DNA from: Selaginella moellendorffii
Taxonomy: Eukaryota; Plantae; Lycopodiophyta
NCBI RefSeq assembly: GCF_000143415.4
Contig: NW_003314303.1
Span: forward strand, 372,460 to 436,459
Direction of reading: 5' to 3'
Length of the DNA stretch: 64,000 bases
Shown piece after piece: positions 560-51,553 of the stretch. The notes under the pieces are model-generated. The model made no database searches. It saw only the letters and a program-made list of their open reading frames with translations, and was not told the origin of the DNA. Position 1 is the first letter of the stretch; the number at the start of each line of letters is the position of its first letter. The position numbers were made by a program, and so were the translations under genes.

Positions 560-2122
560 TTCAGTGCTTCTCTTAAGAATTTCTAGATTTCAAAGCACAC
601 AAACTAGAAATCCCATGGCAATGACTCACAAGATTGCTGTTGATTGCATTGCACAATCAATTAGAGAATTAATATGTAATAAACACAAGCTGCCTTTGAA
701 AGCCCCTCTTAGGTAATCTACCACATTAACATTGTATGCCTAACACCGGAATCCAGGAAAATGATCATTGTGCATCTAGCTAGGGAGTTCCTTAAGGGTT
801 TAAGAGAAGCTGGGTGAAGAATGTGGTGCATTGCTTTCTATACTAGATGTTAAACCCCATCTTGCAGTAAATGTGCAAGAAAATGAATATGAAAGAGCTT
901 GAGCCACATGCAATTCCAAATTTCAACTTTGTTGTTGATTTGTTTGACCTAGATGCTTGAAGCCATGTATGCTCTTGTAGTGCTCTTGACAAAAGGGTTG
1001 GAAAAATCCTTGTATCTTTGACATCTCTTTATCACAGAGCTTGCAGATCGCTAAATTAAGGCTCTTGCTTCTGAATGACCATGCTCTTACTTGATCCTAC
1101 TGGATAACTTACAAAAGAAAAACAAAATAACTTAGAAGAAAGTTAAATGGGAAGGCACACATACATCAAAGGTTCGCTTTGGTTCTTGGCCCTGGATATC
1201 CATTTGTGGCAATGTTGAGCTCTCCTTCACCTTGTAGTAGCTCAAAAGAAATCATTTCAAGTACTTGCATCAAGGTATACAAAAAAAATGTCCTAACGAG
1301 AAAGAAAGTTACAAACTACTTCAAACCATCTTTGAGTCCATCAACTTTTCAGGGACTTGTCATTGGACGTGCAAGGGTTTTCCACAGCCAACCCTGTAAA
1401 CTCAAAACATCATGCTAGATACTAGTCTCCATAGTGAGAAGAATGTTACTTGTTTGTGGAATCATCCTACCTAGTCGAAGATATCTTGCTTGACATTTTG
1501 AACAACTTTCTTTGGACTTGGCTACCTCGTCCAGAGCTGCCACTGTCAATAGAGCCTAAAGATGCTCTCACTATGGATTTGTAATGATGAAAATCTTCTC
1601 TCTGGGCACAAGTAGAAGTTTAAGGCGCTGGAAGAGCTGCTGTCTCATAAGATTCGAGACGACACTGTCCCTACATTTGTATCCTCTAGTATAATTTTTG
1701 AACCTGCAAAGACTCTACATTTCCAATGGCAAAGTACTAAATCCAAACTTGAGAAACCAGCTCCAAAAACTAACAAAGCCACGAAAAAGGAAAAAGAAAA
1801 GGAAGAAAGAAAAAAAAAGGAGGAATGATCACACACCTTGTGCTGGATCTCTCTTCAATCTTTTAACCATATCCAGTGCCCTATTTAGTCCTTTAATCTG
1901 GTGTAGCGTAAAGAAGATGAAGACCATTCCTGAAAGACTTACAAAAACAAAATGTCACCTTCCCTCAGAAATCTCTTATTGCATGATCCATTCAGCTGCT
2001 CAAGTGGCAAGACCTAAGAATCCATGAGAGGTAGTGGTGTTAAACCCCAAAGAAAGAGATCTAGAAACAATACAATTGAGCAAGCAGTCAATTACCTATG
2101 CGAGTCTGGTACTTGTGCTCAT
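560..2122 (-). pseudogene. Degenerate multi-exon gene remnant of unknown product
   Basis: Several minus-strand GT...AG short introns (e.g. near 2095-2060, 1958-1930, 1163-1110) separate moderately GC segments with stops and a CSKC motif. No family recognised. Confidence 0.25.
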
Positions 2123-2681
2123 GTTTCTCTCATAAGCCCATTTTAGTCTCATTTAAATAAAGACTTAATATAGCTTTAGGGCATAAATGGCTTTCAATGG
2201 AATAACATTGAGAAGTAAGTAAAAGGTCTTTGATTGTTTCTATTGATCTAGATTATCAATTATCAGCCTTCACAAAGCTGTTGATTGAAAGATAGAGAAT
2301 TAATACTTGCTGAAAGTAGGCCAAAAATAGTTTATTTAGTTCTATTGTTGAATCTCTTTAAAAAATCTTAATCAGCTAAACAATCATAGAAAAAACTAAT
2401 CTGGATGCACCCACCTATCCGGTGGGTGTAAGGACATCAAGGGCAATAAGGGCATTTAACTGTAAAGGGCAAAATTATGACAAAGAGAAAATTTGAATGG
2501 ACAGAACTTCTAGAAGCAAAATTGTTATCAGTTCAAGGATCTGCAAATAAAAAAGCAAAAAAACTAAAATTCAACCATAATATTGATTTAACTGAGCAAC
2601 AAATTGTTTCTAGATACTATTATTTATCAAGAAAGAATGAAAATGAGTAAATAAAAACTATTAATATATCCAAAGAAAAAC

Positions 2682-4920
2682 ATGAAGAACTTACTCTACA
2701 AAATCAAAAAAAATATATATACAACAAAAGAAGACAAAATACTTATGGAAACTTGGAACTCACAAAAACAAACAAATGAAAAAATAAATATTTTTCGACA
2801 AAGAACAGGGAGTACTATATCAGATGAAAAACTTAAAAGAAGAGTATATTATATTAGAAGCAAAGAAAAAAAAACAATAAAAGAGAAAGAACAACAAGAA
2901 AATGAATATGACATGAACAATCCAAAAAGTATGAAAGCACTACAAATGTATAATGAAGCTATACAGGATATACTGATACATCCATGTAAAATATGTAAAA
3001 GACTTTGGTTTAAATATAATAAAAAAACAAGGATATGCATGCAATCAATGCATGACAAATAAAGAAACATATAAAAGTCCAGAAAAAATTAGAATGAATC
3101 AAATTGATCAATATACAGAACAACTAAATGATATTGAAGAGAAAATGATAGCTCTACATATTTTATTTGAAAATATAGCAATACCAAATCAACCTCAATA
3201 TCAGCAGTGCATAAAAGGAGGAATAATAAATGTCCCAACTAATATTAAACCAATAATTAATAAACTACCAAGATTATTTGAAGAAACACAAACAATAACA
3301 ATTCAGCTGAAACAAAGATTAACTGATAAATATTATTATAAATATGGAATAGCCAGACCACATTATATTTATAATAGTATAAAACAATTACAAGAAACCG
3401 AACTATATAAGAAAAATAAAATTAATATAGATGAAAACTGGTTTCAACAAGCACTAAATTTAGACAATATAGATAATAACATACAAATAATATTAGAAAA
3501 CAAATTACAACAAAAATTAAATGAAGATGATAAAAGTGAAAATCTTATAGACAACCCTGATAATGAGATATTACCAACAGATACTATAGTAATTATCTTC
3601 TTAGATGCAAATCAAATAGATAATTTTACAAATAAAGTTTTAGTTATAGCATCTGGTCAAGGACAACACCCATTAGGATTATTTGTAGATGGAAATGCTG
3701 AAAAAATGGCATATCCAAAACTATTTAGTGGAAAACAAAGACCATTAGACATAAAAAGAAAATTTACATATCAAGAAATAATCCAATGGGAATTAATGAA
3801 TGAGGATAGAAATTTGCATGACATATTAAATATATATTTACAGCAGCATTAAAAACTAAAATCAAATTTGTCAATCAAAATGTAGGTTTTAGATTAAGAA
3901 AATTTACTTATGAAGGAAGAAAAATCACATCAAAAGATGTGCTTGTAAATGGAAATATGGATAAAATATTAAAGTTAAACATAGGTTTTAGAGATTTAAA
4001 AAATCTAAGAATATCACCAGATAATTTAGAAGCACTAAAAAAAGATGCATTTGCGATGATAAAATAATTAGGAGCACCAACACTATTCTTAACTCTTAGT
4101 TGTTCAGAAAGACATTGGGAACCATTAATAAATGCTTTAAAACATTTAAATACAGATATATTACAAAAAGAAGAGATAAAAAATTTAAATGAAAAAGAGA
4201 AAATATATAAAATACTAAGAGCTGATCCAATCACCACAATACGATATTATGCACATAAAACATCAGCATTTAGAAACTTATTAATGTCCAATTATCACAT
4301 ATTTGGAAGGAAAGTAAAAGACTATGTATTTGTAACACAATTTCAACAACGTGGTACACCACATGAACATGCACTAATACGGTTAAAAAATCAACCACAA
4401 ACATTAGAACAAATAAAAGAATATGCTAATGAAAATATATGTACTGATTCAGAGAAACTACCAGATAATATAAAAGATGTTCAAACTCATAAACATAGAA
4501 AAACATGTAAGAAATATAAAAATATAAATTGTAGATTTAATTACCCAATTCCTCCAATTCCACAAACAGAAATCTTAGAGCCTATAAAAGACATTACAAA
4601 ACATGAAAAGGATTCATACAATAATTTACAAAAAAATGAAAACAATACTAGAAGATAAAACTATAGATTTAAAAACTTTAGAGTTTAATGAATATTTAAA
4701 AATAATAGGAATAACATATGAGCAATATAAAGCTACAATAAGATCAACAATAACAAATACAAAATATTGCATGTATTGAAATAGAAATTAAAATAACTTT
4801 ATACAGGTGAGGGAAATGCCAATTCAACAAGCACTTTTTTTAATATTGTCAATCCCATTTCATCATATTGTTAGAACTGTAAAGTTCATTGATCCTAAAC
4901 CACAACAACAACAAAAAAAA
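2682..4920 (+). pseudogene. Helitron Rep (HUH rolling-circle initiator) region with N-terminal Zn finger, frameshifted
   Basis: HPCKICKRLWF...ACNQC Zn finger; LNDIEEKMIA...IINVP...KLPR block; ASGQGQHPLGLF..AEKMAYPKLFSG; motif 1 GAPTLFLTLSCSE (4071-4109); motif 2 TQFQQRGTPHEHALI; CRFNYP. Several stops and frameshifts. Confidence 0.85.
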
Positions 4921-5020
4921 NNNNNNNNNNNNNNNNNNNNNNNNNNNNNNNNNNNNNNNNNNNNNNNNNNNNNNNNNNNNNNNNNNNNNNNNNNNNNNNN
5001 NNNNNNNNNNNNNNNNNNNN
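4921..5020. other. Assembly gap (100 N)
   Basis: Run of n characters. Confidence 1.
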
Positions 5021-5099
5021 AAAATGAAAAATAAAAGATAAAATATTAACAAATACAAACAATTATAATACAAGATGAATACCTTATGGAAACTAGTAA

Positions 5100-6560
5100 A
5101 TATCACCAATTATTAAGAACTCTTAATAAAAAGCAAAGAATAATACATGATGACTTCATATTGAAAAAAAATAAAACAACCTAACAAACAATTGTGTTTA
5201 TTTTTAACAGGAGGAACAGGAACTGGAAAATCAATGCTTTTAAATACACTTATAGAAACACTCAAATGATATTATAAAACAAACCAAGATATAAATAATG
5301 AACCAGGACAAACAATATTAATAACAGCACCTACAGAAAAAGCAGCTTGTAATATAAATGGTTCAACAATACATTCAGTTTTTGCATTTCGACTAGAAGC
5401 ATCAAAACAACGTCAAATAATATTAACAAATGACACATTAGATAAGTATAAAAGAAAGTTTTCAACAATAAAATGTTTAGTAATAGATGAAATATCAATG
5501 GTAAGTATAGAAATGCTACAAGATATAAATAGAAGATGTGAAAGCTTCAAAACAACAAATGGAATAGACTTTGGTGGGATGGATTGTATATTTACAGGTG
5601 ATTTCTATCAATTAAATCCTACATTTGAACACCAATTTATTCAAAAAAAACATATAGATCTGAAAATGATGTCTCCATACACCACCCATGGAAAATAATT
5701 TTAAAATCTATGAACTTACTGAAATAATGAGGCAAAAAGATGATATAATCTTTATAAAAGCTTTAAATAAAATAAAAATAGGAGAACAAACAGATAAAGA
5801 GCTAGAATATATAAATAAACAAGTCACNNNNNNNNNNNNNNNNNNNNNNNNNNNNNNNNNNNNNNNNNNNNNNNNNNNNNNNNNNNNNNNNNNNNNNNNN
5901 NNNNNNNNNNNNNNNNNNNNNNNNNNNNNNNNNNNNNNNNNNNNNNNNNNNNNNNNNNNNNNNNNNNNNNNNNNNNNNNNNNNNNNNNNNNNNNNNNNNN
6001 NNNNNNNGGGACTACATAAAATATTACATTTGAAAAAGAAAATGGCAATTGAAATAACACAAAATATAGCAATAGAAGATGGATTAGTAAATGGAGCAGA
6101 TGGAGTATTACAAGATGTAACCCAGATTGAAGAAGAACAAATAATATGGATAGAATTCCCAAATTTAAAAACAGGTGAAAAAACAAGAGCTAAAGAAAAC
6201 ATAACAATAAAGCAAAATAATGAAAAAAACTGGACACCAATAAAAAAAAATAACAAGAACAATAAATATTACTAAAAATAAAAACTATGTTATAAGTAGA
6301 ACCCAATTTCTAGTACAACCATGTGTAGGAAGAACAATACATAGAGCACAAGGATCAACAGTTATGCAATTAGGATATGACCCATATAAAACAAAATATC
6401 CAGAACAAGCATATACCGCATTATCAAGAGCACAAACACTAAAAGGGATACATTTATATAGACCAATTGAACATAAACACATTAAAATCAATAAAGATGC
6501 AACTAAAGAAATAATAAGAATGACAACAGAAGCACCATGGCAAATTGATTTAATAGATTT
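5100..6560 (+). pseudogene. Pif1-family (SF1B) helicase domain of the Helitron
   Basis: Walker A LFLTGGTGTGKS (about 5198-5233), ITAPTEKAACNINGSTIHS, LVIDEISMV, FGGMDCIFTGDFYQL, ELTEIMRQ, GLVNGADG, TIHRAQGST, QAYTALSRA. Frameshifted and contains an N gap. Confidence 0.9.
5828..6007. other. Assembly gap (180 N)
   Basis: Run of n characters. Confidence 1.
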
Positions 6561-8457: not shown

Positions 8458-11400
8458 CTTTCTTTCGGGAGTATCATCAAGGGGTTCACTCGGCACCGGT
8501 TCATCCAGTGTTTACTTTCCAAGCTCGTTTTTATAACAAGAGGTCTCCTATTCTTCTCTCCGTGTTGGTTGATACAGGTTCGAGTTTATCTTCTATTGCT
8601 CGACCTGTTGCCACACGTTGTCGTCTACACTTGCGTCGTGCGGCGGATCCAGTTTTCATTCTTTATGGCAACAGCCGTACACATGCATGTGCACGAGATG
8701 AGGCGGACCTGGTTGTGCGTGTGGGCGATCTCGAGCTTGAGTTGTAGTCGTTGCGGGTGGTGCCGAGTCAAGCTTTTGACCTCATTCTTGGTATGGATTG
8801 GTTGCAGCACAATCATGCCAAGTGTGACTTTGAGGCTTTTCCCCCTTGTCTCATATTTCCTTATGTTTCATCCATTCCTCTCACTTCCGTACCTCTTCGT
8901 CCCTCTACTTCTACCTCTGCTTCCATTACTTTTGTTCCCCCATTATTTCCTCTTGTGTTTTCATCTTGTTCTACTCTTCCCTTTTCCGATCCCTCCGATG
9001 ATCTTTGTGTTGCAGCTGTTGACCAGCTCATGAAGGAGTATTCTGATCTCTTTGAATTTGACCTATCGTCTGGGGCCAAGATTGCCACATGTCATCCCAT
9101 TCCAACCGGGGATGCTCGTCCAATCAAGGTTCCTGTTCGTCATCGGTCACCCAAGGAGATCAAGATTTTACGTGCAAACGTCAAGGAGATGTTGGAGAAG
9201 GGTGTTATTCGGAAGTCGCGGAGTCCTTGGGCATGTGAACCTCATCTTGTGACGAAGCCTGATGGGAGTATTCGTTTCTGCATCGACTATCGTCCGTTAA
9301 ATGAAGTGACGATCCCGGACGTGTACCCTCTTCCTCACACTGTTGATCTCTTGGATCGTCTGGGGCGAAGTCGTTGGTTCACCAAGCTAGATCTTGCTTC
9401 TGGGTATTGGCAAGTACCGATGGCTGAAGACGATATTCCTAAGACTGCTTTTCGTACACCATTTGGTTTGTACGAGTTTTTGGTGATGCCCTTTGGTTTG
9501 AACAATTCTCCAGCAACTTTTCAGCGAATGATGGACGAGGTTCTTTGCGATATGCCGGAGGTGACGGCTGACTTCATTGATGATGTCTTGATCCACTTGG
9601 AGGGGACGTGGGAGGAGCATGTTCGTGATGTTTGTAAAGTGTTGGATCGGCTATGCGACGTTGGTTTAAAGCTGAAGCGGTCGAAGTGCGTGTTTGGGTC
9701 CAAGGACACAATTTATCTTGGGTACCGTATTTCTCGTGAGGGTTTGCAAGTTGATCCTAACAAACTTGTGGCTGTTCTAAAGTTCCCTACTCCGAAGTGT
9801 GTGAATGATGTGTAGCGCTTTTTGGGTAAGGTGCAGTATCTCGGTCGTTTTGTGGATCATCTTTCCGATCGCACTTTACCATTGCGAGCGTTGCTGAAGT
9901 CATCAACGTCATCTTTCATCTGGTCTCCCGATTGTGAGCGGGCGTTCGTGAATCTCAAAGAGCTATTGACGACTCCTCCGGTTTTGGCATATCCTGACTA
10001 CACTCGACCTTTTATTTTGCGCGTGGATGCTTCTGACATTGGTCTTGGAGATGTGTTGATGCAAGAGAGCTCGAGTGTGCCTGGTCAGCGCCATCCCATT
10101 GCATACATAAGCCGTACATTACAACCAGCAGAGATGAACTACTCCACGATGGAGAAGGAGTGTTTAGCAGCAGTCTGGGGTTTCGAGAAACTTCATGCCT
10201 ATCTACATGGTTCTCGGACGTTACTTGAAGGTGACCATGCTGCTGTTACTTCATTATTGAAGCGGAAGAACCTGGTTGGTCGTACGGCTCGATGGGCTTT
10301 GAAGCTTCAGATATATAATTTCGATGTTGTTCATCGCCCAGGGAGTTCTATGGCTGATGCTGATGCCCTTTCTCGAGCTCCTCTTCCTTCTCCACTCACT
10401 TCTCATGTTTCTGACGAACCTGTTGTTCCAGCATCTGTGGATTTTTTAGATGAGGATTCTGTGCCGTCGGCGGTTGCTGTCCTTGACGTTCAGTGTCCAC
10501 AGGGCGTAGAGCAAGATCTACCTTCTCTGGATGAGGTTCGCGAGGCTCAAAAGATTGAGCCGTGGATTCGAAGGCTTCGAGATGGGTTTGAGAATCCTGC
10601 ATCACTTGCTGATGACTTGCCTTTTCGGCATTTACATTCTCAATATCGCCTTGAAGATGGCCTTCTTTATTTTGTGGGAACGGATCCTGATGCTCATTTA
10701 CGGCTGGTGGTGCCTTCGGTGTTTATTCCGCGGTTTCTCCATGCCTACCATGATTCTCCTATTCTAGGTGGGCATATGGGACACCGTCGTGTCACCGAGA
10801 AGTTGCGCAGATCTTTCTATTGGCCAGAGATGCGACGTGATATTATCCGGTATGTGCGTAGCTGCGTTTGGTGCCAAGCTCGTAATACTCCCCCTTGTGC
10901 TGCGGAAGGACGGTTGGAGTCAATTGCAGTTTCTCGTCCGTTTGAGTTGGTGGCGTTTGATCTTATGGGACCTTTTCCGCGATCGACTGCTGGCAATGAG
11001 TATGTTATTATTGCTTCTGACTACTTGACTCGTTGGGTGGAAGTTGGTGCTCTTGCTAGTGCCTCTGCAACTGCTGTTGGATACTTCCTCCTCAATCGAG
11101 TGGTGTTCCAGCATTCTTGTCCAGAATGGATTCTTTCGGATAATGGTCCTGCATTTATGGCTGAGGTATTTCATGTTTTGACATCTCGGTTGGGGATACA
11201 CCACACTTTTACGAGTGCTTATCATCCACAATCAGACAGTCTGGTGGAACGGCTTGTTCGGACATTCAAAGGGATGATTGCGAAGTATGTGAACTTTCAA
11301 CATTCGGATTGGGATGGTTATTTGCCGTCTCTTCGGTATGCTTATGTCACAGGGGTGCAGAGTTCTGTTGGTGCTTCACCATATAAACTTCTATATGGTC

Positions 11401-37409: not shown

Positions 37410-38030
37410 GTACACAGTGCTGCCTGTACAGCCTGTGCGCGGAAATCCGCCTCTCGGGATCCATAGCCGCGCTCCACCAGAGCCTTCGCGGTCTGGAGCA
37501 CGAAGTGCCGCATTCTCAAGTCAGGATGGTAATATCCTTTCCCGGACGAATTCGTTCGACGGCTTTTTCGAGGCAAAGCACGTACTCCTCATCGGGAATT
37601 CTCTCCTTGAGATCGTGACGTGCTCGTAGAGGATAAGCGGGTTGTCACTGATCCCGGTGGCGTGCGAAAGCAGCTTGACTTCCGGGCTTGCAAATGGTGG
37701 CGTGCTCCACTCCTTACAACGCAACTGGCCACCCGAGGTGTAGCATCCCCACGCTGTTGGAGATCTGGTTGTAAGCCAGCAGCAAGAATCCCATGTTCAT
37801 GCCTTCCACCACTATCCGGAAACCCGTCATGGCAGCGCCGATTCCCATCGCCGTGAAGGCGTTCTCGCAAATCGGCGTGTCCAGGACGCGCAAGTCGCCA
37901 AACTGAGCCTCCGTAGTGGCCGACGTCCTCTCCCATGACGCACACTGTGGGATCTCTCGCCATCTCCTCGAGACCTTCGCGGGCATCGAAGAGCAAGATG
38001 CCGTGCCTGGATACAGATGTGATCAACCTC
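37410..38030 (-). pseudogene. Pyruvate dehydrogenase E1-beta pseudogene with many internal deletions
   Basis: [34 protein letters not shown] and [23 protein letters not shown], collinear with 38740-39721 but frameshifted. Confidence 0.9.
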
Positions 38031-38092
38031 GCAAAGAAAAGATTTGCGTTGGCTACAACTGTGAAAGTTTTTGCAACCTGGTGTACACTGCC

Positions 38093-38497: not shown

Positions 38498-38739
38498 GTG
38501 CGGAGAGGATGGTTCCAGAAAAGAGGTTTTCTTCAATGGCTATGAGCTTAAAAAAAAACTGGATATTTAATAAGGCTCGTGTTCTTCAATGGTTTCCAAA
38601 GCCACTAAACAAGAATTTTTTTCCAGGTATCAACTCGAAAAACTGGTAATGTTCTTCCTTATTGTAAGAATGGATTCGAAGAACTTCCACTCTCGCCGGG
38701 GAATTTAAGAGCGTTTGTCTTTGTCATGATTGTGGAGTT

Positions 38740-40136
38740 TTAGATGAGACCTTGCAACATTTGCTCCACTTTCACAATGATCTGCGCCGGCTGTACCACC
38801 GTCGCGTCCTCCAGCGTTGCAGCGTAAGGTGTCGGGACGTCCTGTGACGACAAACACTCGGGCCGGCCATCGAGGAAGTCCCAGAAGTTGTCAACAATCG
38901 CAGCTCTCAAGCTGGCTCCAATCCCGCCAGTTCTCATGCACTCCTCCACGATGAGAACCTTGTGCGTTTTCTTGATCGAGTTCCCAATCGTGAAGAGATC
39001 AAAAGGCTTGAGCGACCTGATGTCGATGATCTCCGGATCATACCCTCGCTCCACCAGCGTCTTGGCAGCCTGGAGCACGAAGTGCCGCATCCTCGAGTAA
39101 GTCAGGATGGTGATATCCTTTCCCGGACGAACAAGCTCGGCCTCCTCGAGGCAAAGCACGTACTCCTCGTCGGGGATCCTCTCCTTGAGATTGTAGAGAA
39201 GGACGTGCTCGTAGAGGATCACCGGGTTGTCACTCCGGATCGCGGCCTTCATCAGTCCCTTTGCGTTGTATGGAGTGGAGCACGCCACCATTTGCAAGCC
39301 CGGGACTGACTGGAAGTACGACTCCAAACGCTGCGAGTGCTCGGCTCCAAGCTGCTTTCCAACCCCACCGGGGCCGCGGATCACCACCGGGATCTTAAAC
39401 TGACCACCCGACGTATAGTGGAGCATTCCAGCGTTGTTGGAGATCTGGTTGTAAGCCAGCAGCAAGAATCCCATGTTCATGCCTTCTACCACTGTCCGGA
39501 GTCCCGTCATGGCAGCGCCGATCCCCATTCCCGTGAAGGAGTTCTCGCAAATCGGCGTGTCCAGCACGCGCAAGTCGCCAAACTTCTCGGCCAGCCCTTT
39601 GGTGACTTTGTAGGAGCCTCCGTAGTGGCCGACGTCCTCTCCCATGACGCACACTGTGGGATCTCTCGCCATCTCCTCCTCGAGACCTTCGCGGAGAGCA
39701 TCGAAGAGCAAGATCTCGTGCCTGGGAAACAAAAGATATGGTCAAGCTTTGCAAAGAAAAGATTTTAGAACTATGGAAGAAAGAAACTCACCCAGACTTT
39801 GCAGTAACTGGAGCGGATGTTTCACCCTTTGCCTGCGAGCATGAAACGTTGAGAATCTTTAGCAATTTCGACCGAGACGACGAAAGCAAATGGAGAGGAG
39901 ATAGAACTTACCGCGACAGCTTTTAGCGCTAGGCTCTTGTTCTTCCTGCTAGAACTCTGAGACAACCCTCCACCAAATGCGATGGCCTGGGTGTGAACTG
40001 TAGCAAAAGCTTTCGATCAAAACCTTCCAAAACGAAAGAAGATCCTACCTCGGCTTGGAGAGAACTGGACGTTCCCGCAAGACGAAGACGAAGAACAAGG
40101 CACCAAAACCTTTTGAGCCATGGCCGCTGCTGCCAT
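38740..40136 (-). CDS. Plastid pyruvate dehydrogenase E1 beta subunit, copy 1
   Basis: [17 protein letters not shown]...[21 protein letters not shown]...[10 protein letters not shown]. Three short 5' exons encode a transit-like leader. Confidence 0.93.
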
Positions 40137-40449
40137 ATCCAAGAAACAGGAGCTCTCTCCTTCACCCAAGCCCTTCAATCTATCGTATATAATGGGCTTG
40201 GATGTAGCATTTTATAAATCGTAAAAAACAAAAGCCAGGCAGCGATTAGCCCGAGACCTTCGACAATCGAAGCACTTCGCCAATGCCGTTGGTTCTAGAT
40301 CCACAAAGAGGAGCCACCCAAACATCTGGACCGTCAATTTAGCCATGCAAAGTATTAGCGAATAGGACTCTGCCACGTTAGCAATAGAAAAAACATGTTG
40401 TTTGGTCACCAACACCTGTACTTTGTCAAATTCCATCAACAAGGAAAAA

Positions 40450-42640
40450 CGATTTGGTTGACAAAAATGAATCTATCAAATGATAGAAAACTTTGAAATA
40501 AAAATCATGCAAAGGAAGGAAAGAAACCACATTTATCTAATGCAAAAAAAATATTGTTATCTTTTGAAAAGAAGCAAAATTTTATTTTCTTTAATCAGTT
40601 TAAATTATAATAATTATTTAACAAGATCTACTTATTAGAATAAATATCTCTATAATTAAAAATGCCACCTTTTCTTTTTAATTATTTTCATTTTAGATGA
40701 TGGTGCTAGTGAACATTTAGCAATTAATTTTTTTTTGTGTAACACTTAAAAAATAAAAATGCAAATTAAATTAAAGAAAATTTTTGGTATAAAAATGAAT
40801 AAAAGGAAAAAGGTCAATATTTTATGGTATATAAAAGCATTATAATATAATATTGATTAAATATAATATAAAAATATAATATAAACAGACAAATATATTT
40901 GGTTAAAGAAAATAAATGGGTAATGAATGGAAAAAGCTATTAGAATGTTTGAGACTTGACCTTTTGTTATTATCTATATAATAAACTACAATTTATATAC
41001 CTTCACCAAAATTAAATTTATAGAGCATTTTTACATTGCACTAAGTGATAGGCATGTTATAGTAATATAAAAAAGAAATAACTAAATTATTAATAATTAT
41101 TTTATAATTCTTTTATAAAAAATATTTTTCTAATAACTTTATGATATTAACTATAATTTTTATTTTTATATTTTAAATTTACTTAATAAAATTTAAATAT
41201 TTTAACAACTTGTACTGTTTGCTAATACTACATTAAAATAATTCCAAAATATTTGTACCACTTAGCTTTGTCTCATAATTAAAGTTTTCAAAACTTTATG
41301 TTTTATGTAAAAAATAGCAAAAAATATAACATTAAAATATTTATATAAATAATTTTAATTTCTTTATCCTTCTGATATATAAATAAAAATTACTTATAAT
41401 TCTTAAAATAGCTTAAACTTTTAATAATAAAATAATGATTATATTTGTTAAATCATGATATAAGTAATATTTATGTAAAATATGTAATATTTTATTAAAA
41501 TCACTAAATTTTTAAATTTAAATTACATTTCATCTTAAAGAAAGAAATGTGCATTATTAAGAGGTTTTCTTTCAAATGCATGCAATTTAAATTTAAATAT
41601 TATTTACTTAAATTTTATTCTTTTAATTATATATATAGTATTAAGTATATGACATTACATTTTTCTTAGATTTTAGATTATGTTTTGGATTTTATAATAT
41701 TTTAATTTATATTTTGTTATTACTTAGTTAAGTACATAAGAAAGGCTCTTTATTATTATTATATTATCATAAAAGTATGTTTAAATTATTACATAATTTA
41801 AGCTCATATGTATGTAAAAATCTTTAAAAAAACCGTCAAATTTAGTGTCAAAATAGTTAGAAAGAGTTTATTTAATTTGGTATAAAAGGATTAGTCTGAA
41901 TGAGTATTATCTAATGAGAATGAGTAACTGAATACTATAGAATATCTAGAATATCCAGGCATATTCTAGATATATCCACTACCAAATCCTTAGTTAAGCA
42001 AACCAAAGAAAAAAATCAAGTAAGTATCCTTATTAAATATGTTAAATCAATTTACTAACACTTGAATAAAAGGGACTAATAAAGGAAAGTAATAGCATCA
42101 ACCACCATTATAGCAATAATAGAAAAATATTCAAAAAGACTTGCCAATCATATTTACAACATGTGTCCCTAGGTATGGATTTAGCATGTACTATCTGATA
42201 ACATGTTAAATCATGTTATCCTATCTCATACCATTTTATGCCATATTATTTGAGCTTTAGGTTGGGCTTATTTGATGAATTTTGGATGTATTGTTTATAT
42301 GAGTTTACACTTAGCTGAGGCATATTAGCAACTTAAAATTACACTTTGATTTGGTAAAATTAATGTTACCATAAGTTATTACTATATTACTGTTCGACAA
42401 ACACTGATAATATCTAGCTATCAAGACTTATTTAGGTCTTTTTTAATGAATTACAGTTTGTAAAAATAGTTTATAGTAAAATAATATAGCTTTATAAAAG
42501 ATAGGTTCTAATAAAAACTTTAAAACCTTCATTTATTCAATTTAAATTTCCTAAGACTTTTAATTGACTGACTTATTAAACTTAACTCAACTTAAGTTTA
42601 GACCATAAAATAAGTGGTTGTTACTACCCTACCAAACAGC
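40450..42640. other. Very AT-rich non-coding island (possible non-autonomous transposon remnant)
   Basis: About 2.2 kb with no ORF of 60 aa or more and a sharp composition change on both sides. No termini identified. Confidence 0.5.
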
Positions 42641-42649
42641 ACTTTGATG

Positions 42650-43570
42650 CAACATCCAGTGGCTCTGCCATCTCCTCGAAAACTTTAGTAGTTGCCACAA
42701 CTTCCACACTTTGCATGGAAAGCTTTACTTTTAGTCTAGCAAGGAAAGCTCGTGTATTAATAATCTCATCATGAGCTTGCAAGGTCTAGAGCAAATCTGC
42801 ATAGATCAAGATAAAACTTGTCCAGTTTGAATGGGAGTGGCAGGGTATCCTGTTGAAAACTCTCCTTGCATCCTCCAAACTTCCACACCTGATGTAAAAA
42901 TCCATGAGACTGTTCCTGGAAAACTTATCAGATGACACGGCTTGAACGTGAAGAGGCATGACTTTATCGAGAGTTTGGAGCAGCTTTCTAGTCTCGAGCT
43001 TGGTCTGTTCTTTAGCTGGCTATCCGGCGCAAGCGTTCAAAGAAGCAGCAAAAGTCACTCCATCGCGAGCAATCAAATTATAGCCATCACGGTCCCGAGG
43101 TTGGCCTGTTCTTCAGCTGCCATGCCGATGGAAGCGTTCAAAGCAGCAGCAAAAGTCACTCCATCGGGAGCGATCAAACTATAGCCATCTCTGTGTCGTC
43201 GAAGAAACGTCTGGAAATGCTCGTTAGCTACCTCTTTCTCGGTGTAGAAGTTCACCAGACTGCCTGCTACGAAATCATGCAGCAAGCTTTGATCGCTACA
43301 GCAAAGGTCACGGCATCCGGTGGAGCTCGAGTTTGATTTTCTAAGAGCATCCCGAGAGCCAACGATCTCTTGGCCATTGTCAGCGTAGATCAAAGCGTTC
43401 CAGGAGACAGCGTCGTGGAGGGGCATGAATCAAAGCGTTTGCGGTGCTTCCACTTCCACACTTGGAGTGCGACCAAGAGGTTGCCGGAAGCTACGTCTCT
43501 TGCGTGGATGGTCTTCCCTTGGCCTACATTCTTGCAGATTTGAGAGCGCCGAGATGGTGGAGCTCCAAGA
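42650..43570 (-). pseudogene. PPR (PLS-class) remnant, paralogous to 48240-49530
   Basis: DAVSWNALIYADNGQE, FVAGSLVNFY, APDGVTFAAALNA. Shares nucleotide blocks with 48240-49530. Confidence 0.8.
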
Positions 43571-43654
43571 TGGCTGGATAGCTATACACATGAAGTTGCC
43601 CTAGCTACAACTTGGCATCATTGAAGAAAGAATCGAAAGGCAAAAAAAATAGCA

Positions 43655-44527
43655 TCATTCGTAATAGCGGGAGCGGGAGGAGAGAGGCGGCCCGTTTCGA
43701 AAGCTTTGCAGGATGTCCTCAAACTCGTGCCGCGAAGCCCAAGCGAGCCACGCCCTCTCGATAACATACGTCATAAGCTCCTCGGGCGTGCAGCTCTTGC
43801 GGAGCTTGCCCGAGACGGGAGGGAAGGGCGTATACGATTCCCCACCGGCAATGCAGTGCACCCGCAGCGGAAACGGCACCACCCCAGTGGCATCCAGCAC
43901 CAGCGACGCCACAACCTCCGCAAGCCGAGAGTTGCCATCCCCAAACGGCCTGAGCTTGGATCCAACGTCGAGAAATCCGCATGCGGCCACGCCAAACGCC
44001 GGCACCACCCTCTCCTCGACAGGCAACTCCAGCAGCGACGCCACCCCCGACTTGATCTCGCCGAGTTTGCTTGCCACCACAACGGCGCTCACACCCGCTC
44101 CGAGTCCCGCACCGCCGTTGACCACCCTGGCCTGGATGTCAGCTAGGGAGTGCAGGTCAAGGGCGAAGCCGGGTTTGACCGAGTGCAGGGCATATTCCAG
44201 GGCATCGCACATCCCCTGCGACTCGGCGCGCTGCTGGTCGCTGAGGTAGTCGGGGAAGTTGTACTCGAGGCATGCGCGGTTGGAGAGCGCCGAGTCCGGG
44301 TGGGGGATGAGGCGCTTGTCCCTCAGCCGCCCTGATGTGTCGCAGAAGTCGACGAGCTGTGCCTGCCACATTACCTGGGGTATCCTCGACGACGCAGCAG
44401 TAGTAGCGGCCGCAGCAATGTCCTTGACCATGTCTGATGTGCTGCGCTGCTTCTCTGGTTGCATCGTCAGCGCCCTCCACCAAGGCAGCTCCAACGGCCT
44501 CAACCTCATCGCCGCTTTGCTTGCCAT
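43655..44527 (-). CDS. Intronless Fic/Doc-domain protein with a degenerate active-site motif
   Basis: 290-aa GC-rich ORF; ESQGMCDALEY...LDLHSLADIQ and RPFGDGNSRLAE (43951-43916) versus the consensus HPFxDGNGRxxR. A TATATA lies about 30 bp upstream (44558-44563). Confidence 0.75.
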   Translation of the reverse strand: MASKAAMRLRPLELPWWRALTMQPEKQRSTSDMVKDIAAAATTAASSRIPQVMWQAQLVDFCDTSGRLRDKRLIPHPDSALSNRACLEYNFPDYLSDQQRAESQGMCDALEYALHSVKPGFALDLHSLADIQARVVNGGAGLGAGVSAVVVASKLGEIKSGVASLLELPVEERVVPAFGVAACGFLDVGSKLRPFGDGNSRLAEVVASLVLDATGVVPFPLRVHCIAGGESYTPFPPVSGKLRKSCTPEELMTYVIERAWLAWASRHEFEDILQSFRNGPPLSSRSRYYE

Positions 44528-44941
44528 CGATCCTTTCCTTCGACCCTACCGTGACTGTATATAGTCTTAGGCTTTAACCATTATTCTCGTTTGCTAAGCA
44601 ACAGAGAAAAATCTATGAGACATACCCTTGAAGCTATGCATATGAAACCATACCTTGTTACAGCAGCACCATGCTTCACTCCAAGAGTAAAAGCAACAAG
44701 AGCATGGGACCAAGAAGAAGAAACAACTCACCATTTTCTTGATGGAAGACCAGGAGCTTCGATGGCAGTGCAGCCACTACTTCTCGAGCTTCCACAGCTC
44801 ACATATCGATGGTGATTCCAGGCATACTTGACGGACCGCTTGTTCATCTCGAACCTCTCGAGCCGAATTTGATCAGATGGTGGAGAAGACGAGGCTGTGT
44901 ACTCTAGACGCTCCATCGACTCACTCCTTTATTCCACTACC

Positions 44942-47004
44942 TCAAGAAATGATGAATTGCTCATAGGCCACGTCCACCAGGAAGGCAGCAACATCCGTCG
45001 TGTCACACTCCGGAACGCTCTCCAATGGAATGACACTGGCCTTGTTTGTCCTCGACAACGCGAGCGAATGTAGCATCCAAGTTCTCGCTGGCGTACAGTC
45101 CGTGTTCTCAGGGAGGCGCACATATCTTCCTCCGAGGCTGTCCTGGAGAAGCATTACCGTTACTTTTCTGCAAGAAAAGTTCTCAGTTACAAATGAATGG
45201 TAGAAAACAAAAAGACAAAGATATAAACCTTGACACTCGACCATTGCCATCGCGGAATGGGTGAATTTCTAGGAACTCCACCATGTACCGCGCAGCAAGA
45301 GTAAAGTGCTTGCAGAGCGAACATGTTTGTGTGAGCTGGTGGTCTTCCTCAGCAAGGATCTCCCACTGTAAAGGCAGTGATTAAATCGGCTAATATAATA
45401 AACTCACCTCTATGGTCAGTGCCCGGATCCACGCAGAGAGACAGCACTCAATGGCTTTCCAATCAAGAAAGCTTTGCCGCACACCATCACGTAGAGTCAA
45501 ACTATAAGCGTGAGAAGTTCGTAGCTGTTTCTCCACGGGATTCAGCGCAATCACATCATCTATAGTAAGGCTCCGTGCGTCCAGCTTTGCAAGGAAATCT
45601 GGTGGCGTGTGAGGGACTCGTGGAAGCCTGGAGAGCTTAGCCACCATAGAGGACGTAGACAAAGCCTCGTGCCATGAAGGATGAGCCGACGTGCTTCTCC
45701 ACGGGGAAACTCGGAAATGCTCCCCTCGCAAATCTTGCTGTTTGAAACAAGTCAAGACTCACGCAAAAGAAATAGAACTCCAAGATACCTGGTGCCTTCC
45801 CTGCCACAGTTCGTCCTTGACATTGGCAAGAAAAAAGGATGAACAAAAAGCATTAGAAGTACGTAAGGATTCGTGACGAAGCAAATGGGCCAGTACCTGG
45901 TGCAGAGCCGCGGATTGAGAATCCCGAGCAGGAGACATGGACACTAGAAAAAAGCGTTGCAATGAGAATGAAGAACTTTGATAGTCAGAGCACCTGTGGC
46001 GTGGAGACAAGTATTGGAGGGCTGTCCAACAGGCGGAGATCACTGGAGAGAACACTGAAAGCATTAAAAACAAGTAGGAGTCCTAGACGAATAAAACAAC
46101 CTGGTGCAAAGGCTGCGGGTCGACTCATACAAGGCATGGACACTGGGAAAAAGAAGAATGAATTAGAAGGAGAATAGAGGTAAAATGGAGTATCGAAAGC
46201 ACCTGCGACGTGGAGACTGGTATTCAAGGCTGCTCTGGCTGTCCAACAGGCTGCGACCACTGGAAAGAAAAAATGTAAAAACAAGTAGGAACCTTAGACG
46301 AATAAAACAACCTGGTGAATAGGCTGCCGGTAGAGAAGGTCGACTCATACGAGACATGGACACTGGAAAAAAGAAGAATGCGTTAGAATGAAAATAAAGG
46401 TAAATGGAGTACAGAAGAGCACCTGCGACGTGAAGACTGGTATTCAAGGCTGCTTTGGCTGTCCAACATGCTGCGCTCACTGGAAAGAAAAAAAGGAAGC
46501 ATTAGAAACAAGTAGGAATCCTACAGAAAGCCAACAACGGGCCAACAACCTGGTGGATAGGCCGCGGGTAGAGAAGGTCGAGTCATATGAGACATGGTCA
46601 CTAGAAAACACAAGAACAATGCGTTGGAATGAGAATGAACGTTGATAATGGACTAACCTGCGGCGTAGAGACAGGTATTCAGGGCTGATCAGGCCGTCGA
46701 ACAGGCTGCAATCGATGGAAGCCAAGCGCCTTCCACAGCAGGAGGCCGGCACAACACTGTAAGGATGACACGAAAGAAAGACATGAACGAGAGAATGTTG
46801 CGGAACGATCCCTGGTGCGATGCTTTGAAGCGAATCGTCTAGAATGCATACCTGGATTCGATATTTCGAACAAGCAGGGCTCGATTTGCTTCTCCACATG
46901 CCACGAATCCTGAAATTCCAGAGGATCGATACATCGATTCAGCGAGCAGACGATCGATATTACGGACCTGAGGCCTTCACCCTGCCGACGAGAGAGCGCA
47001 TCAT
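44942..47004 (-). CDS. Multi-exon Fic/Doc-domain protein with an intact catalytic motif; core exons 45737-45408, 45365-45229, 45167-44942; 5' mini-exons up to ATG 47004 (connection to the core unresolved)
   Basis: Phase-compatible GT-AG splicing gives SLTIDDVIALN...LRTSHAY...IECCLSAWI...|WEILAEE...FTLAARYMVEFLEIHPFRDGNGRVSR|KVTVMLL...EQFIIS*. Confidence 0.8.
45897..46756 (-). repeat. Tandem array of about four two-exon units (period about 220 bp)
   Basis: A-type exons 46600-46550, 46362-46312, 46142-46101, 45943-45897 alternate with B-type exons 46756-46658, 46479-46423, 46259-46203, 46042-45994, and the introns are homologous too. Confidence 0.85.
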
Positions 47005-47229
47005 CTTGCCTTGCCGCTCGATTACCCTAGGAGAAGGAGAATGAAGAACTGCTGGAGGACGCCGAATTTAAACATTTCCCTCCAGTGTATCCTGGCCGTC
47101 CAGTGTCCGCGTGCCGATCGATGCCACGTGTCTCACCGGATCGCAAGACATACTGCCACGTGTCGGGCATGAAAGACGGACCGCGATGCTGTCGCTCTAC
47201 ACTGCGTCGACGAAGTAAAGGCCGGAATG

Positions 47230-47771
47230 GCTTTTGATCAGTGATACTGGCTTCGTACGCTCGAAACGGGCACATCGAGGAGATCTTCTACCGGATGCCA
47301 GAGTGGGACTCGGTGTCTTGGCTCGGCTTTGCTCTAAACGGGCATCTTGGTCAGGCCGCGAATATCTTCCACTCAATGCCCGAGCAAAGCTCTGTCTCCT
47401 GGACCCGGCTATGCCCAAAACATAAACTCCACAGCCCCGTCTACGATGGGAAGTGCTCGCTCGTGTCCATAGGTATGTCGACAATGGACTACTGGATCCA
47501 GCCAGCCGACGAAACAGCACTTCAGCTGCATGATCGATCTGCTGGGCATTTGGATCACGCGCAGGAGGTCATACTCACGATCCCATTCGTTCCGGACTTG
47601 CTCGAGTGGACGTGTCTCTTGGCTGCTTGCAAGAGCCACAATAGCCTGCACCACGGAGCTCATGCCGCGGAGCGTGTACTCCCGAGAATTTCCACGACGA
47701 CGAGCGCTAGCTACGTTCTTCTCCGGAACTTGTTCTCGCTTAGTGGTGGTGGCAGTATCAAAGTCTTCTAG
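47230..47771 (+). pseudogene. PPR (PLS/E) remnant
   Basis: YARNGHIEEIFYRMPEWDSVSW, AGHLDHAQEVILTIPFVPDLLEWTCLLAACKSH, ASYVLLRNL. Internally deleted. Confidence 0.8.
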
Positions 47772-47874
47772 CTTTCGGGAGTGACTCGATCCAAAACATG
47801 GCAGTAGCGGTTCTTCTAGTGTTCCACTGAGCAAAGGCTTGCCATGGTGACATGAGCCCCGGCGTCGGCTTCGT

Positions 47875-49550
47875 TCATATCCAGCAAAGCTTGTACGCAA
47901 CTCTTGCCACCACGGGATTTTTCCACTTCCAGCAGGCACCGAGAATACTTCTCCAGATCCCGGCATTTTCTTCCAAAGCCATGCCTTTTACCAAGCTCAG
48001 AGCAGCCTCGAGTTTGCCGGCTCGGCCGTAGAGATCGACCATTGCGCTATAGTGTTCTAAGCTCGGAGAAGCTCCATACTTGGATACCATCGTCTCGAAA
48101 CAGCGAGCTCCTTTCTCCACAAGGCCTGCGTGACTGCAAGCTGTGAGGAAGCACAGCAACGAGCTGGAGCTCACTCGCATAAACTCGCCCTCCATCTTGT
48201 GGAAAACTCCGAGTTTCTCCACAAGGCCTGCGTGACTGCATCTCCGGCTCTTCGTACTCGGCTTAGATCGATATCAAACTCGTGCAGTTTGAATGGGAGT
48301 GGCAGGGCATCCTGTCGAAAACTCCTTCCACACCTGGCGTACAAATCCATGACACTGTTCCCGACACTCCTGCAAAACTTATCGCCCGACAAGCTCTTCT
48401 CGGCTTGAACGTGAAGAGCCATGACTTTGTCGAGAGTTTTGAGCAGCTCTCCAGTCCCGAGTTTGGCCTGTTTTATCGCTGCCATGCCGCCGCAAGTGTT
48501 CAAAGCAGCAGCAAACGTCACTCCATCGGGAGCGATCCAACTATATCCATCTCTGTGTCGTTGAAGAAACCTCTGGAAAAGCTCGTAAGCCACCTCTCCC
48601 TGGCCATTCTCAGCATATCCCAAGATCAGAGCGTTCCATGACACCACATCTGGCTGCTTTATCCTGTCGAAAACCCTCTCGAGCCTGCTCCACCCGTCCA
48701 CACTTTGCGTAGAAGTTCACCAGACTGGCCGCTACGAAATCATCGCTTCCAAATCCGAGCTTCTCAGCTTGCAAGCGTAAGTCTCTCCCCTTGAGCAGCA
48801 TCACCGCCTTCTTCCCATCCTCTTTCACGGCCAAGTTCGGCCAAGCTTTGATCACTGCAACAAAAGTCCGCAAGTTTGGCAAGCATCTAGCAGCGTCCAT
48901 GCCTGCCGAGAACAAATCCAAACTCACTCCAAGATCTCTGGAAGAACTAGTATCAGCATACCCGAGAAGGAGCGAGGTGACGACGTCGTGACGAACCATC
49001 CTATCGAAAACTCTGCGAGAATCCAGCAAACTCCCACACTTTGCGCAGACATCCACGAGCGAGCTCACCACAACAATGTCCTGCTCAAATCCCATCCTTG
49101 CAGCTCGAGAGTGACTGTGAAAAATGTAGAGGAATGGGAGGGAAAGCCTCGATCTTTGTAAGAAGCTCACTATGGATGTTTCTTTCCTCGCCAGGTTTGA
49201 TCGCTGCAGCAAAGGTCACGGCATCCGGTGGAGCTTGAGTTTGATTTTCTAGCAGCATCTCCGTTAGCGTCTCGAGCGCCAAGATCTCTTGGCCATTGTC
49301 AGCGTAGCACAGGATCAAAGCGTTTCAGGGGGCAGCGTCATGGAGGGGCATGGAATCAAAGACCCTGGTCGCGTTTGCGGTGCTTCCACACTTGGAGTAA
49401 CAAGGCTGCTGGCGACCAAGAGGGTGGATTCGTTGCCGGAAGCTATGGCTCTTGCGTGGATCGTCTTTGCTTGGCCTGCATTCTAGATTTGAGAGCTGCC
49501 AGGAGCGATAATAAGGTTGAGCTCCAGCTCAAGATGAGAAAAACTTCTTG
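47875..49550 (-). pseudogene. PPR (PLS/E) pseudogene
   Basis: SSLVDVCAKCGSLLDSRRVFDRM, DVVSWNALILGYAENG, LTACSHAGLVEKG...EHYSAMVDLYGRAGKL. Frameshifted. Confidence 0.85.
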
Positions 49551-50190
49551 AAAGCTTTGCCATTGCTATGTTTACTTGAAATTAGAGTGCAAGGAATAAG
49601 AATATCCGGAAAATATATTTTAATCTTAATATTATTTCAAATGGACCTGGGACAGTGGCTCTAGAGAACTGGATTGTCACATAAATTTGGTTCATTCTTG
49701 CCATGAGTTAATAAGTATCTACTTTGCAGTTTTAATTTATATTATAGAATATTCTTTTTACAATTATTATTAATTAAAAACTTTAACGATTTAAATTATA
49801 GTTGTTACACAAAATTTATTATATTATTGGTAAATTAGAAAAATATAGTTATTAAAATCTCCAGTTTATAATATTTTTAATCATGAAAATAACTAATGCT
49901 AGTATATTAATAATATAATAGAATATAACTTTTCCAAAGTAAACCATATGTTACTTGCACATAGTGTTTATAAATTTAAACACAATTTATATTAGTGATA
50001 AATAACAAACAAATTATCTTGAAAAATATCCTAAAATTTACGCTAATATTTTTCGTATATCATATTTTAAAGTTAGTTTTCTGCTCAAAAGTTATTTTGT
50101 TTCGAGACAAAAAGAATGGATCTTATTGTTTGATTAGACGAGAAACGAAAAAAAAAACTCTCTTTTTCTCCTAGTTCTAGACAAGCCGTT

Positions 50191-51553
50191 CTAGACAAGC
50201 CCTTGGCACATTTGCTCCACTTTCACCACAATCTGTGCCGGTTGCACCACCGTCGCGTCCTCCAGCGTCGCAGCGTATGGCGTCGGCACGTCCTGCGATG
50301 ACAAACACTCGGGCCGGCCGTCGAGGAAGTCCCAGAAGTTGTCAACAATCGCAGCTCTCAAGCTCGCTCCAATCCCGCCAGTTCTCATGCACTCCTCCAC
50401 GATGAGAACCTTGTGCGTCTTCTTGATCGAGTTTCCAATCGTAAAGAGATCGAAAGGCTTGAGCGACCTGATGTCGATGATCTCCGGATCATAGCCTCTC
50501 TCCACCAGAGTCTTGGCAGCCTGGAGCACGAAGTGCCGCATCCTCGAGTACGTGAGAATGGTGACGTCCTTTCCCGGACGAACAAGCTCGGCTTCCTCGA
50601 GACAAAGCACATACTCCTCGTCGGGGATCCTCTCCTTGAGATTGTAGAGAAGGACGTGCTCGTAGAGGATCACCGGGTTGTCACTCCGGATCGCGGCCTT
50701 CATCAGTCCCTTCGCGTTGTAAGGAGTGGAGCATGCCACCATTTGCAAGCCCGGGACCGACTGGAAGTACGACTCCAAGCGCTGTGAGTGCTCGGCTCCA
50801 AGCTGCTTTCCCACTCCACCGGGACCTCTGATAACGATCGGGATCTTGAACTGGCCACCCGAAGTATAGTGGAGCATTCCCGCGTTGTTGGAGATCTGGT
50901 TGTAAGCCAGCAGCAAGAATCCCATGTTCATGCCTTCCACCACTGTCCTGAGTCCCGTCATGGCAGCTCCAATCCCCATCCCCGTGAAAGAGTTCTCGCA
51001 AATCGGCGTGTCGAGGACGCGCAAGTCGCCAAACTTCTCGGCCAGTCCCTTGGTGACTTTGTAGGAGCCTCCGTAGTGACCGACATCTTCGCCTATGACG
51101 CACACTGTGGGATCTCTTGCCATCTCTTCCTCGAGACCTTCGCGAAGAGCATCGAAGAGCAAGATCTCGTGACTGGAAGTAAAGAACCAAGTGAAAAACT
51201 AGATTTTGGAGGCTGAAACTTGTAAGAACTTACCCGGATTTCGCAGTGGTCAGATTCGGAGCTTCGCCTTTCACCTACACGCATGATGGGTAAAACTTCT
51301 CTGTCGGTAGGAAGAACTTACCGCGACAGCTTTTAGCGCAGAGCTCCTGTTCTTCCTCGATTCCTCGCTCAATGCAGCTCCTCTAACGACAAGGGCGCCT
51401 GAAAGAAGGCTTCATCGAGAAATTCCCGGAGACAGCGAGCTGATTACCTCGAGCTGGAACAGCCGATGAAGAGCACCGGATCCGCCCAGCATTTGGCGGC
51501 GACAGCAGCCGATTCTCAATGCCGGGAGCAAGCGCCGCTCCTGCCGCGGCCAT
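50191..51553 (-). CDS. Plastid pyruvate dehydrogenase E1 beta subunit, copy 2
   Basis: Mature region nearly identical in protein to copy 1; leader [17 protein letters not shown]... is spliced through short introns. Confidence 0.93.

Follow-up and report, generated by a model that had tools for sequence, protein, structure and literature searches.

Two neighbouring genes related to Fic (Fido) proteins were found in a stretch of 64,000 nucleotides (nt) from the lycophyte Selaginella moellendorffii (contig NW_003314303.1), hereafter called the window, whose positions are used throughout. Both genes are read from the minus strand, head to tail: the stop codon of the upstream gene SELMODRAFT_419342 lies at 44942-44944 and the ATG of the downstream gene SELMODRAFT_419341 at 44527. 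The initial annotation, which was made from the sequence alone, had described them as an intact enzyme and a pseudoenzyme resembling a toxin/inhibitor module, and its coordinates for both genes, its motif positions and the spacing of 414 bp all hold (Table 1). It had placed the pair in a plant genome, which is correct, but the contrast that it drew with the gene set of flowering plants is unfitting for a lycophyte. Both genes are already labelled as 'Fido domain-containing protein' in UniProt. The SELMODRAFT_419341 locus, 20.9 kb on GL377607.1 (assembly GCA_000143415.2), is identical in sequence to the window in reverse complement. A second haplotype of the locus lies on GL377632.1, with 95.5% identity to the window across 4.2 kb, and the pair of genes is retained in both haplotypes.

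Table 1. Features of the Fic-related locus in the window (aa, amino acids; ORF, open reading frame; UTR, untranslated region).
Feature	Position	Strand	Evidence
Dead-Fic (pseudo-Fic) gene SELMODRAFT_419341, one 290-aa ORF	43655..44527	-	Uninterrupted ORF, RNA cover
Degenerate Fic motif RPFGDGNSRLAE	43916..43951	-	Motif search; alignment with paralog and FICD
60-nt segment annotated as intron, in fact coding	44315..44374	-	RNA continuity, paralog alignment
5'UTR intron of downstream gene, ~60 nt	44594..44653	-	Joint 44589/44654 in X1, X5 and X18 contigs
Transcribed spacer (upstream 3'UTR and/or downstream 5'UTR)	44654..44941	-	X18 and X5 contigs
eEF1A pseudogene relics in spacer	44672-44703 and 44803-44851	-	Loose read ends
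Multi-exon Fic gene SELMODRAFT_419342	44942..47004	-	Gene calls, RNA joints, exon map of the 410-aa public model
Catalytic Fic motif HPFRDGNGRVS(R)	45229..45263	-	Motif search, Pfam Fic, PDB 8uqu
Largest exon, beginning of Fic-domain region	45408..45737	-	Opens with (S)KICEG in the expressed haplotype
Remnant of a 45-nt exon	45789..45852	-	Haplotype alignment; acceptor AAT vs CAG, 11 nt deleted
Mini-exons of 42-57 nt alternating with introns of 50-70 nt	45994..46600	-	Tandem repeat, RNA joints, translation

The upstream gene consists of about 14 exons, and twelve GT..AG joints were recovered from RNA, three runs being used as contigs and a fourth as raw stranded reads. Its public model in the window haplotype has 410 aa, and the RefSeq model of the other haplotype, LOC9653009, has 435 aa. 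When the RNA-supported exons were chained on the GL377632.1 haplotype, a protein of 434 aa was obtained, which agrees with the LOC9653009 model save for one acceptor. The full canonical Fic motif claimed for this gene was confirmed: it carries HPFRDGNGRVSR, starting at 45263, which fits the core motif HxFx(D/E)GN(G/K)RxxR, and the codon of the last Arg is split by an intron (45168-45228) and completed at 45167. The motif exon matched Pfam Fic with an E-value of 2.3e-10, and the whole proteins scored 37.3 bits (410-aa model) and 36.8 bits (LOC9653009) against the same profile (PF02661), above its gathering cut-off of 24 bits. The match extends over residues 309-343 and covers profile positions 59-93 of 93 only. 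The protein also matched PDB 8uqu over 45 residues (E 2e-5), and the 110-aa exon preceding the motif matched nothing in ESM Atlas or PDB searches. The Fic motif is contained in the C-terminal 220 residues, and the N-terminal half is made of Ser-rich units of ~36 aa (SVHVSYESTFST..LLDSQSSLEYQSPRR), each encoded by two mini-exons. Within the mini-exon region there is a tandem repeat with a period of 220 (46065-46493). The Ser-rich repeats arose through tandem duplication of a ~220-nt unit, composed of two mini-exons and two introns of ~60 nt; every mini-exon is a multiple of 3 nt in the GL377632.1 haplotype.

The downstream gene is a single ORF of 290 aa, 92-99% identical to SELMODRAFT_424463 and SELMODRAFT_419341. 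Its Fic motif fails the core pattern: His is changed to Arg, the second Gly to Ser and the last Arg to Glu, with Pro-Phe, Asp, Gly-Asn and the first Arg kept, and in the family profile it aligns to IHPFIDGNGRTSR of FICD. The description of this ORF as uninterrupted, with the catalytic His, the second Gly and the last Arg replaced, was borne out, and we found it intact in both haplotypes and expressed. Between the haplotypes its coding sequence is 99.6% identical vs 95.5% for the surrounding 4.2 kb. The public 264-aa models (SELMODRAFT_419341 and SELMODRAFT_424463) are too short, as they splice out 60 nt that are coding. This segment encodes residues 52-71, VMWQAQLVDFCDTSGRLRDK. No splice joint was found there in any RNA run, the contigs of three runs covering 43576-44589 without a gap, and its 20 residues align with the paralog described below (LVDFCDTSGRLRDK vs LLEFVDVSGRMMEN), indicating that the segment is coding. 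The equivalent of the Fic inhibitory helix lies inside this misannotated intron. It reads SGRLRDK (Asp70, 123 residues before the motif) and has Asp-Lys at the place of the inhibitory Glu-Gly/Asn, and thus does not match the inhibitory motif. The initial annotation had proposed SNRACLEYN for this position, which proved wrong: this stretch aligns instead with RHILETRY of FICD, in the helix after TVAIEG.

An inhibitory motif of its own was found in the expressed allele of the upstream gene. The LOC9653009 protein, which represents the expressed haplotype, has SKICEG at residues 205-210, an exact [S/T]xxxE[G/N], with the Glu 141 residues before His350. For FICD we take the distance from the inhibitory Glu to the His to be about 129 residues; in the paralog of the downstream protein the corresponding Glu precedes the motif by 130 residues, and a bacterial Fic protein used for comparison has SNRIEG 134 residues before its own His. 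By shuffling, the probability of an exact inhibitory motif 120-150 residues ahead of the His was 0.023. The presence of SKICEG at the class II distance points to a class II, self-inhibited arrangement of the expressed upstream allele. The earlier statement that neither gene has an exact inhibitory motif is therefore right for the window haplotype but not for the expressed upstream allele.

Several small changes relative to GL377632.1 and to all RNA set the window haplotype of the upstream gene apart from the expressed one. It lacks 1 nt at 45704, where all contigs and all 7 raw RNA reads carry the extra base, and as a result (S)KICEG and the Fic core no longer share a reading frame. Furthermore, 8 nt are missing in exon 46042-45994, 1 nt is missing at the end of exon 45943-45906, and only a remnant of the 45-nt exon is left. 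A loose end of a read contig at 45740 (run X1) fits the intact 45-nt exon of the other haplotype. When spliced at the sites supported by RNA, the window allele would read (S)KICEGSISEFP and then shift frame, running into a stop about 45 codons further on. The 410-aa public model keeps the Fic core in frame by using an acceptor at 46054, skipping exon 45943-45906 and including a 27-nt exon at 45789-45815. It reads the SKICEG segment in another frame, as QDLRGEHFRVS, so that the exact inhibitory motif has no match in it, and its splice pattern had no RNA support in the runs examined. For the window allele, frame-preserving splice models were enumerated, which gave hundreds of solutions and was uninformative; the exact mapping of the 410-aa model was used instead. 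Across the linker in which the haplotypes differ (45700-46060), RNA shows sequence of the GL377632.1 type only. Over 219 codons of the Fic-domain exons the two haplotypes show 7 synonymous and 3 non-synonymous differences, and the catalytic exons are intact. 'Intact enzyme' is thus a fair term for the locus but an uncertain one for the window haplotype, with its indels and lost acceptor; the window allele may be null, alternatively spliced or partly the result of assembly error.

Transcripts of both genes were present in RNA runs X1, X5, X18 and X21, and the co-expression that the initial annotation had suggested checking was found. In the raw reads of X21 the first mate lies on the plus strand throughout, as it does for minus-strand RNA in most stranded libraries, and the depth ranged from 1 to 9 across the downstream ORF and from 0.2 to 7 across the upstream exons. 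The depth of the downstream gene exceeded that of the upstream gene in both X1 and X21. The 5'UTR of the downstream gene contains an intron, the boundary of which is blurred by an allelic 2-nt difference, and reaches at least to 44747. Because of this extent, the TATA-like element at 44558-44563, which had been taken as the gene's own, lies inside the transcript according to the RNA contigs. A single X18 contig of 2920 nt spans both ORFs (43576-47170) and X5 contigs overlap at 44732-44747, although a contig spanning two genes does not prove a single transcript; X1 had no cover at 44740-44987. Read-through or overlapping transcripts across the two genes are likely.

The link between the downstream protein and the Fic family was drawn through its relatives. 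Against Pfam Fic, neither the 290-aa ORF nor its 264-aa public model gave a match at E<=1. A HMMER search of 1.84 billion protein representatives returned its own allele and SELMODRAFT_427875 only (E 1.7e-8), and no further relatives of the dead-Fic protein were found in a word-indexed profile search with the family or in 185,579 prokaryotic genomes. SELMODRAFT_427875 is located on another scaffold of the same genome and shares 31% identity over 226 columns (pairwise E 1e-17). It reads RPFVDGSARVGE, and the motif of the paralog alleles is RPFVDG(S/N)ARVGE. The downstream protein and the paralog have in common the changes of His to Arg and Arg to Glu, followed by EVVxSxxL and PFPLRxH after the motif. 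At the inhibitory-helix position the paralog has SGRMMEN, a near-match. The paralog alleles scored 17.2-21.7 bits against Pfam Fic (E 4e-4 to 1e-2), below the cut-off, at the correct profile positions 54-93; UniProt gives them the 'Fido domain-containing protein' label too. A profile of the dead-Fic family matched human and nematode FICD over 147 columns (E 4.9e-4), and 15 of the 16 PDB matches listed were Fic proteins. In addition, 96 of the 100 clusters nearest to the downstream protein by ESM Atlas features belonged to the Fic set (score 0.95). On these sequence comparisons, a Fic ancestry of the dead-Fic family appears well supported.

The dead-Fic family also bears on the age of the changes. 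None of the four alleles of its two loci has an interrupted reading frame, and the indels among them preserve the frame; between the paralog haplotypes there are 3 synonymous and 3 non-synonymous changes and two in-frame indels. As the replacements of His by Arg and of Arg by Glu are fixed in a paralog of 31% identity, the loss of the catalytic residues would be old and maintained and not a recent decay. The second dead-Fic locus (SELMODRAFT_427875 and SELMODRAFT_407182; ORFs 10001-10678 and 10001-10881 of the extracted loci) is bordered by an eIF-5/PPR region and by receptor-kinase genes. For one of its alleles (10001-10881), the public model of 251 aa overruns a stop encoded in the DNA, which follows a 30-nt in-frame deletion.

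How the two genes of the window relate to one another was examined by BLASTP and profile comparisons. Their similarity extends over 17-41 residues, about 36 columns, at the motif only. A recent tandem duplication of one Fic gene is ruled out by this confinement to the motif, and the linked dead paralog of the initial annotation is not a recent copy. The active/dead pair did not recur at the other dead-Fic locus. Within 10 kb of the second dead-Fic locus, which is the sole other one (GL377660 and GL377571), no Fic motif, Fic-like ORF or relative of the upstream protein was found in either haplotype. It follows that the dead-Fic family can exist without an adjacent enzyme.

Taken together, we consider it fairly probable that the locus holds two anciently diverged Fic (Fido) genes, a self-inhibited enzyme upstream and a non-catalytic relative downstream, and that their adjacency does not reflect an obligate toxin/inhibitor unit. 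The upstream protein of ~435 aa would carry its Ser-rich repeats in the N-terminal part and the full motif in the C-terminal part, in a class II layout such as that of FICD. It would act by modifying a hydroxyl side chain with adenosine monophosphate (AMP) or a related phospho-group, under restraint by its own glutamate. The downstream protein would be an FICD-like, non-catalytic protein of Fic fold that acts by binding. The adjacency of the two genes would most likely be due to local clustering or to an old duplication within a lineage-specific Fic repertoire, and functional coupling between them is presumably lacking.

Several observations weigh against this reading. The Fic likeness of the upstream protein can be demonstrated over ~45 residues only, the motif helix and its flanks, and the 290-aa ORF itself has no Pfam match, with the FICD match of its family profile being borderline. 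AlphaFold2 models were unusable for both proteins, with a mean predicted local distance difference test (pLDDT) score of 37.4 for the upstream Fic domain (3-sequence alignment) and 40.4 for the 290-aa ORF (5-sequence alignment). A Foldseek search of PDB with the low-confidence 290-aa model gave nothing below E 0.66, noise only. The Fic fold that had been assigned to both proteins is thus not confirmed by structure. Furthermore, the two haplotypes of the downstream ORF differ by 0 synonymous and 2 non-synonymous codons, which is too few to estimate the ratio of non-synonymous to synonymous substitution rates. Finally, the 414-bp spacing, the common strand, the co-expression and the contig across both ORFs fit a functional unit.

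These last points lead to the alternative that the two genes form a regulatory module, in which the dead Fic would bind the adjoining enzyme via a Fic-Fic interface, comparable to that of the FICD dimer or of Campylobacter fetus Fic1-Fic2, and inhibit, activate or retarget it. It might matter most for the upstream allele without an inhibitory motif of its own. In addition to the layout of the locus, the retention of the pair in both haplotypes speaks for it, neutralisation between Fic proteins of which one is degenerate has been shown in bacteria (PMC5651007), and the dead Fic resembles FICD, which is regulated by dimerisation (PMC6826200). However, no Fic gene adjoins the dead-Fic paralog, and with SKICEG present in the expressed upstream allele itself a partner inhibitor is not needed. 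The downstream protein has Asp-Lys in place of Glu-Gly/Asn, and therefore the canonical glutamate cannot be donated in trans. The higher RNA depth of the downstream gene also fits a separate promoter. We regard such a module as rather unlikely, and the toxin/inhibitor version of it that was originally put forward is unsupported and at least as doubtful. The most specific form, in which the dead Fic is a dedicated trans-regulator forming a heterodimer with the adjoining Fic, a eukaryotic counterpart of the bacterial Fic-Fic toxin-antitoxin pairs, seems improbable to us. If it were true, the window haplotype would be a natural enzyme allele without the self-inhibitory SKICEG segment, and control of that allele, if it is expressed at all, would rest on the partner.

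The remaining alternatives concern what the downstream ORF is and where the genes came from. The downstream protein could still be an enzyme with altered chemistry, as are Doc, AnkX and AvrB within the Fido superfamily; Doc is a kinase and AnkX transfers phosphocholine. The motif retains its Pro-Phe, Asp, Gly-Asn and first Arg, the substitutions are conserved in the paralog and hence not random, and AvrB, a Fido protein, is reported to rhamnosylate RIN4 as a glycosyltransferase (PMC10866546). With Arg in place of the general base His, and Glu in place of the Arg that binds the gamma-phosphate, the chance of such an activity is slight. We know of no Fic enzyme described with Arg at the position of the His. 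Could the ORF instead be a decaying, non-functional copy, transcribed by read-through from the Fic gene only? The missing Pfam match, the two non-synonymous haplotype differences, the read-through contig and the restriction of the family to one species in the databases searched would agree with this. It is nevertheless hardly to be expected of such a copy that 290 codons stay open in both haplotypes, that its paralog of 31% identity is full length with the same motif and in-frame indels only, that its RNA depth is higher than that of the upstream gene, and that its coding sequence is better conserved between haplotypes than its surroundings, and we think decay improbable as well. As for a bacterial source, Fic genes are mainly bacterial, and in a survey of Fido proteins eukaryotic members were found in metazoa and a few fungi only (Kinch et al., 2009; PMC2686095). 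However, 13 spliceosomal introns of the upstream gene are confirmed by RNA, both genes lie on scaffolds of megabase scale in both haplotypes amid PPR, transketolase-family and callose synthase genes, and no bacterial relative of the dead Fic was found in the 185,579 prokaryotic genomes or the 1.84 billion proteins. Contamination is essentially ruled out by the introns in RNA and the plant-gene neighbours on both haplotype scaffolds, and a bacterial Fic cassette acquired by very recent horizontal transfer is extremely improbable; an ancient transfer could have taken place.

Among known systems, FICD/HYPE, the metazoan class II Fic AMPylase/deAMPylase of BiP, is close to the genes of the window in two respects. 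Of the solved structures, it matched the dead-Fic family profile best, over a stretch that begins with the helix following the inhibitory one and ends with the motif helix. Its layout, with an exact [S/T]xxxE[G/N] about 130-140 residues before the His, is shared by the expressed upstream allele. However, neither Selaginella protein has a Pfam TPR match or, by eye, an obvious transmembrane anchor. The downstream protein is without the catalytic His and the inhibitory Glu, and the upstream protein differs by its Ser-rich 36-aa repeats, its low identity and a Fic match around the motif only. The class I FicTA systems (VbhT/VbhA) are similar in concept, that of a Fic enzyme under the control of a separately encoded neighbour, and the upstream motif region gave a weak PDB match to VbhT, among others. 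Antitoxins of class I are small (~60 aa) and supply the inhibitory Glu in trans, whereas the Selaginella neighbour is a Fic-like protein of 290 aa without the Glu and the upstream allele has its own motif.

Another bacterial parallel is Campylobacter fetus Fic1-Fic2, in which the toxin is neutralised through Fic-Fic interaction between an inhibitory-motif-bearing and a degenerate Fic (PMC5651007). As in Selaginella, the two fic genes adjoin; one is canonical and has an inhibitory helix, and the core motif of the other is degenerate. However, Fic2, the degenerate member in C. fetus, is itself the toxin and still has the catalytic His, where the degenerate Selaginella member has Arg. The Selaginella locus is moreover eukaryotic, nuclear and intron-bearing, and its pairing is absent at the paralog locus. 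Intact Fic-derived proteins with non-canonical residues are also found among the Bartonella Bep proteins, many of whose FIC domains have degenerate motifs (PMC8401265). Those are bacterial effectors, whereas the R-P-F-x-D-G-x-x-R-x-x-E motif has no relative outside Selaginella in the databases searched. Degenerate Fic domains and Fic pseudoenzymes are thus a known kind, of which the R..E version found here is a lineage-restricted member. Our literature search found nothing on plant-encoded Fic proteins, which are largely undescribed.

The surroundings of the pair are ordinary plant genes in both haplotypes: PPR, two transketolase-family, callose synthase and MatE genes. The two transketolase-family genes (Transket_pyr/Transketolase_C; 38737-39725 and 50188-51176) are located to either side of the Fic pair, on the same strand, and share 92.7% identity across 989 nt, indicating a recent duplication; a third, partial copy lies at 37452-38045. 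PPR-type ORFs with motifs such as VSWNALI occur on either side of the pair (42796-43547 and 48258-49496, also 47241-49212) and are ~75% identical to one another in DNA. AT-rich blocks at 2001-6000 and 40001-42000 have a guanine plus cytosine fraction of 0.22-0.27 vs a background of ~0.45-0.54. In the spacer between the two Fic-related genes, loose read ends at two relics translate to TIERFEKEAAEMNKRS, ITIDIALWKFETNR and ISKDGQTREHAL..GVKQMICCCN, which we take to be eEF1A, and a PDB search with the spacer ORFs gave no eEF1A match. A depth spike of 64-240x at 44616-44863 is artefactual, because hundreds of partly matching reads of true eEF1A mRNA latch onto these two short relics. Some Fic/Doc enzymes are known to target EF-Tu; nothing connects this with the spacer relics.

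For the annotation of Selaginella, our results mean that the downstream gene model needs correction, as its 60-nt 'intron' is coding, and that the inhibitory motif of the upstream gene stays in frame in one haplotype but not in the other. The locus would consist of an expressed Fic gene of class II type and a member of a small family of catalytically dead Fic proteins known from Selaginella only. It could serve as an entry point to two questions: whether early land plants have AMPylation-type signalling, and what the function of a Fic pseudoenzyme is.

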